A stretch of 64,000 nucleotides of DNA, from the IMG/VR virus record IMGVR_UViG_3300023179_000009, positions 372,001-436,000 of that record; one strand, written 5' to 3'. Made by a program: the position numbers and the translations under genes. This document shows, piece after piece, positions 97 through 53,705 of the stretch. Below the pieces are notes generated by a model that worked only from the letters and a program-made list of their open reading frames with translations, ran no database searches and had not been told where the DNA came from. Each line of letters starts with the position of its first letter. Position 1 is the first letter of the stretch.

Positions 97-693
97 TTAT
101 GCCGCCGGATTTTGTATTTTTTCTTGGGAAAAAGTTTCTTTTAGATGGGATTCAATTTCTTTTAACCCTATCTTTTTAGATGCGTTTATTATCTCCAATC
201 GCATCTTATCTGATTGGTGTAAATTTTGCCAAACATCTCGTCTAATGGCCCAATTTTCAGAAACTACATCCTCTGAATAAGAGAAATCTTCTGTTTCTTT
301 GGGGATTGTGTATTTTTCCAAAAATAAACTGAGTGGGACTGCGTAAATCTTGTTTTTGTAAATAAAAACATCGATACCAGCGTCTACACAAGCGTAAGAA
401 TTTTTGTTTTGATTGGCACTGGATTTAATTAACTCTTCAATCATAAATTGTATTTGAATTTCTTTTTTGTTTTCTTTCAAAAAAGTTGTCAAATCTAATT
501 TTTTATTATTAATTCTTTCTTTTTGGTAGATTTTTATAGTCTCCATCGTTATGCTCTCATGAGATTGAGATTGCATAATACGATTTGCTATTGTGATTGC
601 TTGTTCGAAACAAAAAGATTTAAACGATGGCAAGAAAATTTTTTCAAAAGTGTCACAATTCATCCGGCAAGCTTTTGATAAGTAATTCATCAC
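97..693 (-). CDS. hypothetical phage protein
   Basis: 198-aa ORF with an AAGGGAG RBS at ~697-703 and a sigma70-like promoter upstream; no motif recognised. Confidence 0.7.
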   Translation of the reverse strand: MMNYLSKACRMNCDTFEKIFLPSFKSFCFEQAITIANRIMQSQSHESITMETIKIYQKERINNKKLDLTTFLKENKKEIQIQFMIEELIKSSANQNKNSYACVDAGIDVFIYKNKIYAVPLSLFLEKYTIPKETEDFSYSEDVVSENWAIRRDVWQNLHQSDKMRLEIINASKKIGLKEIESHLKETFSQEKIQNPAA

Positions 694-729
694 AGACTCC
701 CTTCTGGTGTTTAAAAAACTAACTAAAAA

Positions 730-757
730 ATTCTACAAAAAATTTTTTGCTTGTCTA
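730..757 (-). promoter_or_regulatory. putative sigma70-type early promoter
   Basis: minus strand TAGACA-16 nt-TAGAAT with an A-tract/T-tract spacer, upstream of 97..693. Confidence 0.45.
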
Positions 758-760
758 GTA

Positions 761-913
761 AAAAATCTTTGATCTCAGGTCGCTCGGCTAACAAATGCAC
801 CCCGGAATCCTCGGGACCGATTTGCACCATCTAAATAGTGGGTTAGGGAGTAAGCCTAATGCTTTTGTTCACGTTTTAGTGACGCACCGCCCTCAATGAA
901 TCAAAGAATTTTT
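761..913. ncRNA. candidate structured non-coding RNA or cis-element
   Basis: GC-rich intergenic island. The ends pair (TCTTTGAT near 766 with ATCAAAGA near 900) and enclose hairpins CAAAT..CCCG/CGGG..ATTTG, TTAGG/CCTAA and TCAC/GTGA. Confidence 0.45.
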
Positions 914-1232
914 AAACAATTTGTACTTGGTTGCCGTTTATCTTTACTTTTTTAATCTCTACTTCATCGCCATTTTTGTTTTTCATTTGGCTTTTGGATA
1001 TTTCATCCAAGAGCCAAATGTTTTTTTCTTCATTTTTTTCAAAAACTATTAAATAATCTTCAAATATTGCGGCATAAGAATTGCAGTAAGCAAGTTGTCT
1101 TCCTTTTTTGTGTTCTAAATCTACAAGATTTTGAAATCTGTTTTCTCCAATCAAGTAATCTGGTCCGTTTTTTTCAAAAAAAGAATCTATTTGATTGGCA
1201 ATCAAACCCACTGCTTCTTTTTTATCGTTCAT
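912..1232 (-). CDS. hypothetical protein
   Basis: 106-aa ORF with ATGA overlap to the upstream gene. Confidence 0.65.
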   Translation of the reverse strand: MNDKKEAVGLIANQIDSFFEKNGPDYLIGENRFQNLVDLEHKKGRQLAYCNSYAAIFEDYLIVFEKNEEKNIWLLDEISKSQMKNKNGDEVEIKKVKINGNQVQIV

Positions 1233-1441
1233 CTTTGCTTCGCCAAACTTTTAAAAATTTTATGCCAAAAATTTTCATCTTGAGCATTTCTTTGATTGCT
1301 CAGAAATAAATTCGATTTCTTCGAAGGAACGATTCCTAGCCCACGACATTTTGCACACTTTATGTTGGCACCGGATACGCTACTCCGATGCCAACCACAA
1401 CCCCTACAATTTTTGCAAACTCTGTCTTCGAAATCGTTCAT
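1229..1441 (-). CDS. small DnaJ-type zinc-finger protein
   Basis: two CxxCxGxG motifs (CKNCRGCG, CAKCRGLG); ATGA-coupled to HU. Confidence 0.65.
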   Translation of the reverse strand: MNDFEDRVCKNCRGCGWHRSSVSGANIKCAKCRGLGIVPSKKSNLFLSNQRNAQDENFWHKIFKSLAKQR

Positions 1442-1755
1442 AAAACGACTGCTGAGTCTTTTAGTTGCTTCACTGGTTTAATTTTTAATCGGACAGAGGC
1501 TGGTTTTGCCTTAACTGTGATTTCTTGCTTTGTTAAAGGAGAAATCATTTTTCTTTCTGGTCTTGCTGGTTTAATTACCTTGGTGATTTTGCAAACGCCC
1601 GGAACAGTGACTGTTCCGTTTGAATTTACTTGCTCTACAACCAAATTTTGCAAAGCCTCTAGAGCTAATTTTGATTGTTGTAGAGTAAGACCAGCAAGAT
1701 CTGCAACTTTTTGTCTTATTTGACTGGCTGTCATGTTTTTGTTTTTTTGCGTCAT
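1438..1755 (-). CDS. hup: HU/IHF-family DNA-binding protein
   Basis: HU signature: N-terminal helices, VTVPGVCKI, arm RKMISPLTKQEITVKAK, KIKPVKQLKD. The start was placed at MTQKNK behind a GGAG RBS rather than at the ORF-track start 1803. Confidence 0.85.
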   Translation of the reverse strand: MTQKNKNMTASQIRQKVADLAGLTLQQSKLALEALQNLVVEQVNSNGTVTVPGVCKITKVIKPARPERKMISPLTKQEITVKAKPASVRLKIKPVKQLKDSAVVL

Positions 1756-1805
1756 TTTTAAATTCTCCAAAAATTTTGGTTTCAAAAATTGAAACTTGTT
1801 CAACC

Positions 1806-6771: not shown

Positions 6772-8262
6772 TTACTTTTTTGACATAAAGCGAATTTGAT
6801 TTTGAAATGAATCAAGTTCTAATTGCTTTTTTCTTTCATCTGCTAGTGTTGAATCGACGTTATTTGTAAATGGATCATAAATGTCTAAGAAATCATCGGA
6901 AACTTCACTTTCTCCATCTTTATAAACAAATATTTTTATTCTTGGTTGTCTTGTGTAATTTAAAAAAGCATCCACCAGATCTGGCTCTACTTTACCTATT
7001 TTTACGACAAAATCTTTTAGTTTTCTTGGAGGTAATCCGGCTGTCACGAATCCGTTTGTTAAACTTGACAACTCATCTGCCTCAATTGAGCCACTTAAGC
7101 CCAAAGACTTAATCAAAAAGACTATCTTGTTAAGGTCTTTTTGATCTATTTCTAAATCCATCAATGATTTTGGATCGTTCATTCTCAAAAGATAAGCCAA
7201 AGCCATTTGCTTGTCGCCTAACTCGGATATTTCTTTGGGAAAATTTGCATCGAGTATTTTGTTCGGAAAAACATGGTTTAAAATTCCCAAGTCATTACAT
7301 GTGGAAAGATATTTTCTTGAGTCAACTTCTTCTTTGTCCATTCCTTTTTTAAATTCATCCATCATGTATTTTCTATCCAACCCTCTCAATTTTTCACTTA
7401 ATTTTTTAACTTTTTGTTTCTCTTCATCAGAGACCTTGGAGGCATCGCCATACAAAGTTAGCATCCTAGCGTATCTCAGTATCCTTGAAGGATCTTCTTC
7501 TAATTTTTTCTCTATGTCTCCAATAGAATTTATTTTTCCGGCTGCTAAGTGATGCATGCCGCCAAAAAAATCATACAAATCTTTATTGGGTCCATTGTCA
7601 TTATTCAAAAGAACATACATTCCGTTTATTGTAAAATCTCTCCCTGCTGCATCATCTTTTTGAGTGCCCAACTCAGGGTCTTTGTCGATGAGACCCTTGG
7701 GGGTTTTTGTGAAAACTTCTAAGGTGTATTCATCGTCATTTACTTTAATACCAAAGACAAAAGGACGACCATTCTTATTCTCCCTCTGTACCCAAAAGTA
7801 TTGGTTGTTTCCCTTTTTAATATTTGGGCTATCTTTTAAAGTTTTTAAATCTCCCAATTTATTAAAAAAACTAAAACCATTTTGTTTAAGTAGGTGGTAA
7901 ACCTCGTCAGGCGAAGCACTTGTTGCTAACTCTACATTTCTAGGTTTTTTATTAAGTAGATGATCACGCACAGATCCGCCGGTTAAAAATAATTTTTTAC
8001 TAGTTATCTTAACAGGTTTTTCTCCACCTGTGTTTTCGTCTCTAGACCAACCCCAATTTGCACCTTGCTTAAAAGCTCTAACGATGGGTGCTAAATTTTT
8101 GTTTTTACCATAGTTCTCTGACTTTGGATCGTCCGATATTACAAAAGGAGAAAATTCATTTCCATCTCCTAAAGAAACCTTTGACCCAACGGGTTTTGAA
8201 GACTCTATATTTTCTTGTTGTGATTCTTTTAAAATTTTAAATTCAACAAAAGATTTTTTCAT
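6772..8262 (-). CDS. CCA-adding/poly(A) polymerase class II nucleotidyltransferase homologue with altered catalytic site
   Basis: LTGGSVRD, DAAGRDFTINGM, DFFGG and EEDPSRILR motifs are present; the usual DxD position reads N-V-E. Confidence 0.85.
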   Translation of the reverse strand: MKKSFVEFKILKESQQENIESSKPVGSKVSLGDGNEFSPFVISDDPKSENYGKNKNLAPIVRAFKQGANWGWSRDENTGGEKPVKITSKKLFLTGGSVRDHLLNKKPRNVELATSASPDEVYHLLKQNGFSFFNKLGDLKTLKDSPNIKKGNNQYFWVQRENKNGRPFVFGIKVNDDEYTLEVFTKTPKGLIDKDPELGTQKDDAAGRDFTINGMYVLLNNDNGPNKDLYDFFGGMHHLAAGKINSIGDIEKKLEEDPSRILRYARMLTLYGDASKVSDEEKQKVKKLSEKLRGLDRKYMMDEFKKGMDKEEVDSRKYLSTCNDLGILNHVFPNKILDANFPKEISELGDKQMALAYLLRMNDPKSLMDLEIDQKDLNKIVFLIKSLGLSGSIEADELSSLTNGFVTAGLPPRKLKDFVVKIGKVEPDLVDAFLNYTRQPRIKIFVYKDGESEVSDDFLDIYDPFTNNVDSTLADERKKQLELDSFQNQIRFMSKK

Positions 8263-53454: not shown

Positions 53455-53504
53455 AAATTTTTATTATCCTTTTCTAGATATTATAGCAAATTTAAAAAAA
53501 TACT

Positions 53505-53705
53505 ATGAAATTTAAAAATTGGATCCAAAAAGAAAATCTTGCTGGTCCCGGTGGAGGGCCAAGTTTTTCTCCCGAAGATCAAGAGGCTTTAAACCTAAAC
53601 ATTTCAACAAGAGGGGCCGGAGCTTTTCCTAATTTTTCTCAAAAAATAAAGTTTATGTCGAAAAATAAAAACGAAAAGATACGACAAAAAAAGTTAATTT
53701 TTTAA
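53505..53705 (+). CDS. small hypothetical protein
   Basis: 66 aa starting MKFKNWIQKE. Confidence 0.55.
   Translation: MKFKNWIQKENLAGPGGGPSFSPEDQEALNLNISTRGAGAFPNFSQKIKFMSKNKNEKIRQKKLIF

Follow-up and report, generated by a model that had tools for sequence, protein, structure and literature searches.

The DNA analyzed here is a stretch of 64,000 nucleotides (hereafter the window), positions 372,001 to 436,000 of the 458,813-bp virus record IMGVR_UViG_3300023179_000009. The record has 34.9% GC, carries 12 tRNA genes, and its DNA is found in lake and freshwater metagenomes of several studies. Near the start of the window all genes run on the minus strand. In the direction of transcription they are an HU-like protein, a 70-aa CXXC zinc-finger protein, a 106-aa protein here called X, and, after a gap of 218 nt, a 197-aa protein without Pfam or PHROG match. 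The gap holds a GC-rich stretch, which the initial annotation described as a closed, multi-hairpin non-coding element of about 150 nt downstream of the HU operon. Table 1 lists the features of this locus and other features mentioned in the text. The genome and its lineage are designated G000, and contigs of relatives are designated by L and a number.

Table 1. Features of the RNA element and its surroundings (window positions unless marked as record positions; bases in RNA letters are read 5' to 3' on the minus strand)
Position	Strand	Feature	Observation
760-914	-	Whole RNA element, 155 nt as modelled	Starts at the stop codon of gene X and ends in a run of six T; covariance model score 191.9 bits
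897-913	-	P1, 5' arm of the closing helix	Overlaps the TAA stop of gene X; 16 pairs, 7 with compensatory changes, 100% of cells paired
761-777	-	P1, 3' arm	Inner UGAGA invariant; one A bulged
759-773 with 900-914		Terminal inverted repeat	15-nt arms, 93% complementary
890-896	-	Internal loop, 5' side, UUGAGGG	Invariant in all 7 distinct sequences; tandem G.A/A.G pairing with the 3' side is inferred from sequence
778-784	-	Internal loop, 3' side, AGCGACC	Invariant
886-889 with 785-788	-	P2, CGGU with GCCG	Three pairs invariant; the fourth (U.G) lost in L034/L035; no covariation
870-881	-	P3 hairpin, CAC / loop / GUG	One pair covaries (CG to AU in L034/L035); loop length and sequence vary
859-869	-	P4, 5' strand of the long-range helix	10 pairs with the 3' strand, 4 with compensatory changes
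790-800	-	P4, 3' strand	
844-858	-	P5 hairpin, UAGG / 7-nt loop / CCUA	UA to CG compensatory change in L007/L030; loop 4 nt in L027
825-843	-	P6 5' strand (841-843, ACC) and variable hairpin P6b (825-840)	Outer P6 pair changes AU / GU / UA; P6b always closed by CAC/GUG
816-824	-	Bulge (C/A)AAAUC (819-824) and P6 3' strand (816-818)	Bulge conserved
801-815	-	P7 hairpin, CCCG-AGGAUUC-CGGG	Invariant in every homologue
730-757	-	Sigma-70-like promoter of the next gene (predicted), TAGACA, 16 nt, TAGAAT	10 of 12 consensus matches; starts 3 nt after the T-run; kept in close relatives (TACAAT in L007/L008)
738-770	-	Possible alternative hairpin of the T-run and P1 3' arm with an A-run in the promoter spacer	14-nt arms, 86%, 5 nt apart
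694-911		Gap between the 197-aa gene and gene X	218 nt
97-690	-	197-aa protein	No family
912-1232	-	Gene X, 106 aa	Always directly upstream of the RNA
984-1020	+	Hairpin followed by seven T, inside gene X	16 pairs; resembles a terminator for antisense transcription
1229-1441	-	70-aa CXXC zinc-finger protein	Anti-TRAP/DnaJ_CXXCXGXG below cut-off (Pfam)
1438-1803	-	HU-like protein	Bac_DNA_binding 2.9e-12 (Pfam)
1232-1304		Junction of gene X and the zinc-finger gene	71 nt replaced by 74 other letters in a related strain
6772-8262	-	496-aa protein	Matches phage tRNA nucleotidyltransferase (CCA-adding enzyme) families (phrog_2244, 1.1e-27)
53455-53693	+	67-aa ORF, glycine/proline-rich middle	Second most GC-rich gap of the window; fold z 0.0
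Record 122834-123168		tmRNA gene	RF00023, 82.7 bits; tag frame ending ...YAMAA
Record ~160100-160830		547-aa frame with TROVE (Ro60/Rsr) matches	
Record 161547-161634		88-nt tRNA-like gene	ARAGORN "tRNA-Thr"; Rfam tRNA 43.7 bits
Record 348962-358876		About 10 kb reaching 72% GC	

The observation made in the initial annotation was confirmed. The ends of the stretch are complementary, and its GC content reaches 0.46-0.51 (0.51 in 100 nt) against a genome mean of 0.35, the highest of any ORF-free stretch of at least 100 nt in the window. The runner-up turned out to hold a 67-aa ORF and is not an RNA candidate. The hairpins that had been proposed, CCCG/CGGG (P7), TTAGG/CCTAA (P5), CCA..TGG (P6b) and TCAC/GTGA (P3), are all kept in the homologues described below. 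One detail is wrong: the outer CAAAT/ATTTG pairing around the CCCG hairpin is broken in three lineages (L007, L009 and L034/L035), and it is replaced by the long-range helix P4, which covaries. Note that on the window's own sequence the fold is no better than that of shuffled sequences (z -1.3 on the plus strand and -0.6 on the minus strand). Folding no better than shuffled controls had been named beforehand as a ground for refutation, and taken alone this result would have wrongly refuted the finding.

To find relatives, direct DNA searches were carried out first, but neither a distant-mode search of the INPHARED phages nor four exact or gapped patterns in IMG/VR found any homologue. Protein-guided scans of IMG/VR with the two flanking proteins, HU and a 90-aa neighbour also found nothing, and that collection seems to leave out the kin of this phage. 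A scan of a genome collection gave two chance 19-mer hits in GC-rich Chloroflexota. A word search of a protein database, however, found X and the 197-aa protein at 90-94% identity on other contigs, which carry the same intergenic element at 96% identity in three sequence variants. An exact 20-mer scan of metagenome contigs then found a diverged copy on a 63-kb contig of 36% GC (L009), beside three chance hits in GC-rich contigs (L010-L012). A profile of X run against 1.84 billion representatives gave 27 relatives, and their contigs were scored with a covariance model of the element (R1). This yielded two more lineages, L027 at 142.6 bits and L034-L036 at about 110 bits, and a further copy of the G000 type, L030, at 188.5 bits; L019/L020 score 145.7 bits. 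In all there are 7 distinct sequences of 148-210 nt in four lineages of related freshwater huge phages. In the 459-kb genome itself the model finds no second copy.

Read on the minus strand, the element is closed by P1, which has 16 pairs here and about 22-24 in L027 and L034. A 7 x 7 internal loop, which can form tandem G.A pairs, and P2 follow. A three-way junction then carries P3, and P4 ends in a four-way junction with no unpaired bases, formed by P4, P5, P6 and P7. P6 continues, after the conserved bulge, into P6b, which is 14-16 nt here, in L002/L007 and in L027, but about 65-70 nt in the L009 and L034 lineages, so that a hairpin of variable length sits at a fixed site. On the 7 distinct sequences, 98.4% of 315 pair cells are standard pairs, and 14 of 45 pairs (30 cells) carry changes on both sides, values reached by 0 of 500 shuffles. 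Sliding the partners by 1-3 columns drops the pairing to 28-52%. P1, P3, P4, P5 and P6 each have at least one compensatory pair, while P2 and P7 are supported by conservation alone; for P7, without variation there is no covariation evidence for or against it. It should be noticed that the sequences come from related phages, so the shuffle test overstates their independence, and that the model-based alignment leans towards the model. However, a count based on a MAFFT alignment of four sequences and an RNAalifold prediction had given the same helices beforehand. What is more, homologues fold better than shuffled sequences, with z of -5.5 (L027), -5.3 (L034) and -2.2, the first two adopting this architecture on their own.

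Which strand is the RNA on, and is it under selection? The structure holds 25 G.U cells and one A.C cell, and if it is read as plus-strand RNA the pairing falls from 98.4% to 90.8%. The genes on both sides are on the minus strand, and no plus-strand promoter-like site lies upstream. These results fix the minus strand. Between lineages the RNA is 80-92% identical, whereas the neighbouring gene X is 45-65% identical in DNA and 28-41% in protein (X homology, 31%, E 1e-10). Within the RNA, the terminal helix is the most variable part, and the internal loop, the junction and P7 are the least variable. This is the pattern of a folded RNA with a functional core, not that of transposon ends. In a related strain from another freshwater sample, which differs at the junction of X and the zinc-finger gene (Table 1), the neighbouring coding DNA is 8-13% diverged, while its contig across 331-956, the RNA included, differs at only 2 of 626 places; the relatedness is mosaic.

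The genomic context is richer than a position downstream of the HU operon. The element always starts at, or 8 nt after, the stop codon of X. In L009/L019-L024, L027 and L034-L036 the next called gene is smpB (PF01668), a ribosome-rescue gene: in L027 it follows at 0 nt and the extended P1 includes its AUG, in L034 it follows at 17 nt, and in the L009 type at 114 nt. Both X and smpB also occur without the RNA in other relatives. In two of them, L028 and a JGI contig, X and smpB abut with no RNA; L028 has only 6 nt between the genes, and its alignment with L027 shows a clean presence/absence without duplicated flanks, so the RNA is a clean extra unit. The present phage has no SmpB by tblastn or by a six-frame Pfam search, although it has a tmRNA, which ARAGORN missed and which would need the host's SmpB. 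The gene order HU ... X - smpB - small membrane protein - about 121-aa protein - about 200-aa protein is conserved in L006 and L028, where homologues of the 197-aa gene lie a few genes beyond smpB. The G000 lineage therefore appears to have lost smpB and two neighbours while keeping the RNA. Within that lineage a U-A pair of P5 has become C-G, which argues that the RNA is still under selection without a phage smpB.

Does the element belong to any described kind of RNA? Against Rfam 15, the window gives 0 matches at the gathering cut-off; at E up to 10 only chance-level hits (E 1.1-8) appear in 650-1000, none covering more than part of the element, and none falls on the element in four homologues or in nine related loci. 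ARAGORN finds no tRNA or tmRNA in the window, and RF00023 finds the true tmRNA of the phage but nothing here. There is no sequence similarity to that tmRNA (score 17 against a shuffle mean of 16.9), and the P7 loop has a 7-nt complementarity to it that is not significant (p about 0.015 for one of seven segments tried). Although it is adjacent to smpB in three lineages and has a peripheral hairpin of variable length, as tmRNA, the usual RNA neighbour of smpB, has, it lacks an acceptor stem, CCA end, T-arm, tag reading frame and pseudoknots; the stem of P7 has 4 bp and its loop is not a T-loop. Bacterial and phage Y RNAs of the YrlA type share a closing stem made by the two ends, a branched tRNA-like module and a size of about 100-200 nt, and the phage does encode a TROVE/Ro-like protein. 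But no Y RNA or YrlA family of Rfam matches, no T-loop or D-loop sequence is present, and the TROVE gene lies 212 kb away beside its own tRNA-like gene, with which it may form a phage Ro plus Y-RNA-like pair. It is not a retron RNA, since no reverse transcriptase is adjacent; RVT_3 hits in relatives are on 176-206-aa proteins about 1 kb away. As with intrinsic terminators, the helix in this phage and in the L009 lineage is followed at once by 5-8 T, at the end of an operon and in front of the next predicted promoter. However, the "loop" is 120-190 nt of conserved structure, too long for a simple terminator scan to call P1, the stem is AU-rich, and L027 and L034 have no T-run. RNase III-processed intercistronic stems, such as the early R sites of phage T7 and the processing stems of pre-rRNA, are also long helices formed by sequences flanking a functional unit, whose cleavage separates messages and can free a start codon, but they are simple irregular hairpins or enclose ribosomal RNA, while here the helix encloses a conserved multi-helix core. 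Searches of the literature found no paper describing the motif, leaving aside the catalogue of 8,495 phage candidate RNAs predicted from IMG/VR (PMC10690425). The candidates of that catalogue, which were found in the same way (intergenic, conserved, covarying and without assigned function), average 67 nt and reach at most 151 nt; the present sequences are 148-210 nt. We regard the element as a new family of structured non-coding RNA embedded in a phage operon, unusual in its size and complexity and in its link to the ribosome-rescue locus.

What might this RNA do? The best explanation is that it is transcribed as the 3' extension of the HU / zinc-finger / X operon, with no separate promoter evident, and that P1 sets the folded core apart from the mRNA. 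In this phage P1 plus the T-run most likely ends the transcript, leaving a 3' end protected by a compact fold, and a new promoter-like site follows at once; the same termination is probable in the L009 type. The T-run is absent from L027 and L034, so termination cannot be the common function of the family. In relatives that carry smpB downstream, P1 is 18 to about 24 bp and reaches, or in L027 covers, the smpB start codon. A perfect helix of more than 20 bp over the start codon would block translation unless it is cut, and there P1 is most likely a target for a double-strand RNase such as host RNase III, whose cleavage would release the core and free the smpB start, as in several RNase III-activated messages. 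The phage has no RNase III gene, so a host enzyme would be needed. The near-invariant core, with the tandem-GA internal loop, the four-way junction, the AAAUC bulge and the P7 loop, most likely acts as a specific protein-binding surface, the candidates being X, SmpB and HU, in that order. X is the constant neighbour. Its structure model (pLDDT 88) is an N-terminal helix followed by a small beta-barrel, with best matches to Hfq, Sm and Lsm proteins, but these are weak (Foldseek E 0.06-0.3; VIA Z at most 4.3) and give a lead rather than a finding. None of 22 members of the X family has a Pfam family, and Atlas feature hits (PH-like, scores at most 0.86) are below the level that means anything. 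No listed holder of the phage DNA is an RNA run, and two metatranscriptome runs of a study that holds it gave no contig on the stretch, which is no evidence either way. Thus the analysis itself establishes the family, its fold, its strand and its genomic linkage, while transcription, processing, termination, the protein partner and the function are inferred. We are nearly certain that this is a conserved structured minus-strand RNA, but the mechanism as a whole is about as likely as not. The proposal in the initial annotation of an undescribed phage small RNA or processing element, probably on the minus-strand transcript, is supported in its lack of any Rfam, tRNA or tmRNA match, in its selected structure and in its strand, while the production of a discrete RNA and its role remain inference.

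Other explanations are less likely. One is that the element is a cis-acting leader of smpB, whose cloverleaf-like core would mimic the tRNA-like domain of tmRNA, so that SmpB of phage or host would bind it and, with P1 covering the start codon, repress its own translation, as ribosomal-protein and threonyl-tRNA-synthetase operators do. The position directly upstream of smpB in three lineages, the smpB AUG inside P1 of L027, the four-way junction with 4-bp arms and 7-nt loops, and the tmRNA of the phage favour it. But the G000 lineage keeps the RNA, with a compensatory change, in the absence of smpB, no acceptor-like end is present, the comparisons with tmRNA and tRNA described above were negative, and a P1 of 16-24 bp is too stable to act as a switch on its own. 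This reading is unlikely. A self-cleaving ribozyme of a new class, cutting the transcript between X and the next gene, is more doubtful still. The element does have near-invariant internal loops and junctions inside covarying helices, and it is compact and sits between genes in phage genomes, as many hammerhead, twister, hatchet and pistol ribozymes do; its 3' core contains CUGAGA, which recalls the hammerhead CUGANGA box. However, no ribozyme family of Rfam 15 (hammerhead, twister, twister-sister, hatchet, pistol, HDV-like or hairpin) gave a hit at E up to 10 on four homologues, CUGAGA is paired in P1 and lacks the G8 A9 register, no GAAA box sits in the required place, and there is no evidence of cleavage. 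A riboswitch or other ligand-sensing element controlling read-through into the downstream gene would agree with a conserved core closed by P1 and followed by a T-run (G000, L009) or a start codon (L027), but it is improbable, as P1 is far longer than riboswitch P1 helices, the downstream genes differ (smpB, or an unrelated 197-aa gene behind its own predicted promoter), no metabolic gene link exists, and Rfam gives no hit. The least likely is a mobile DNA element (a miniature inverted-repeat element or an orphan transposon end) or another DNA-level site: despite the terminal inverted repeats, the patchy presence among relatives and a core much more alike than the flanking genes, which lateral spread could also produce, there is one copy in 459 kb, always at the same genomic site, without visible target-site duplication at the L027/L028 junction, its terminal arms are the least conserved part and covary whereas transposase-bound ends are usually conserved, its internal long-range helices covary, and the 25:1 excess of G.U over A.C points to a single-stranded RNA of one polarity.

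Huge phages carry parts of the translation apparatus, namely tRNAs, tmRNA, SmpB and release factors (PMC7162821), but their non-coding RNAs beyond tRNA and tmRNA are almost unexplored. The element described here is a large, intricately folded RNA under much stronger constraint than its protein neighbours, fixed in relatives at the junction in front of smpB and kept even where smpB is lost. A more speculative scenario, unlikely on present evidence but not excluded, is that it forms the core of a new phage ribonucleoprotein acting on translation or ribosome rescue: a tRNA-shaped four-way-junction RNA, excised from the X-smpB transcript, that would work with SmpB or with the small beta-barrel protein X and could be a decoy or adaptor for the host rescue machinery; alternatively, it would be the new class of self-cleaving ribozyme considered above. 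If it is a trans-acting RNA or ribonucleoprotein, it adds a new component to phage control of host translation; if it is a processing or ribozyme element, it shows how these phages punctuate long operons. Either way, the covariance model now allows the family to be traced, and the constructs involved are small. The 496-aa protein resembling tRNA nucleotidyltransferases fits the tRNA and tmRNA set of the phage. The pairing of the T-run and the P1 3' arm with the promoter spacer, for which the L009 type has a similar GCUUUUU/AAAAAGC option, may be an alternative hairpin or just AT-rich chance. Elsewhere in the 35% GC record, the block of about 10 kb with up to 72% GC could be an acquired block, a mis-assembly or host DNA.
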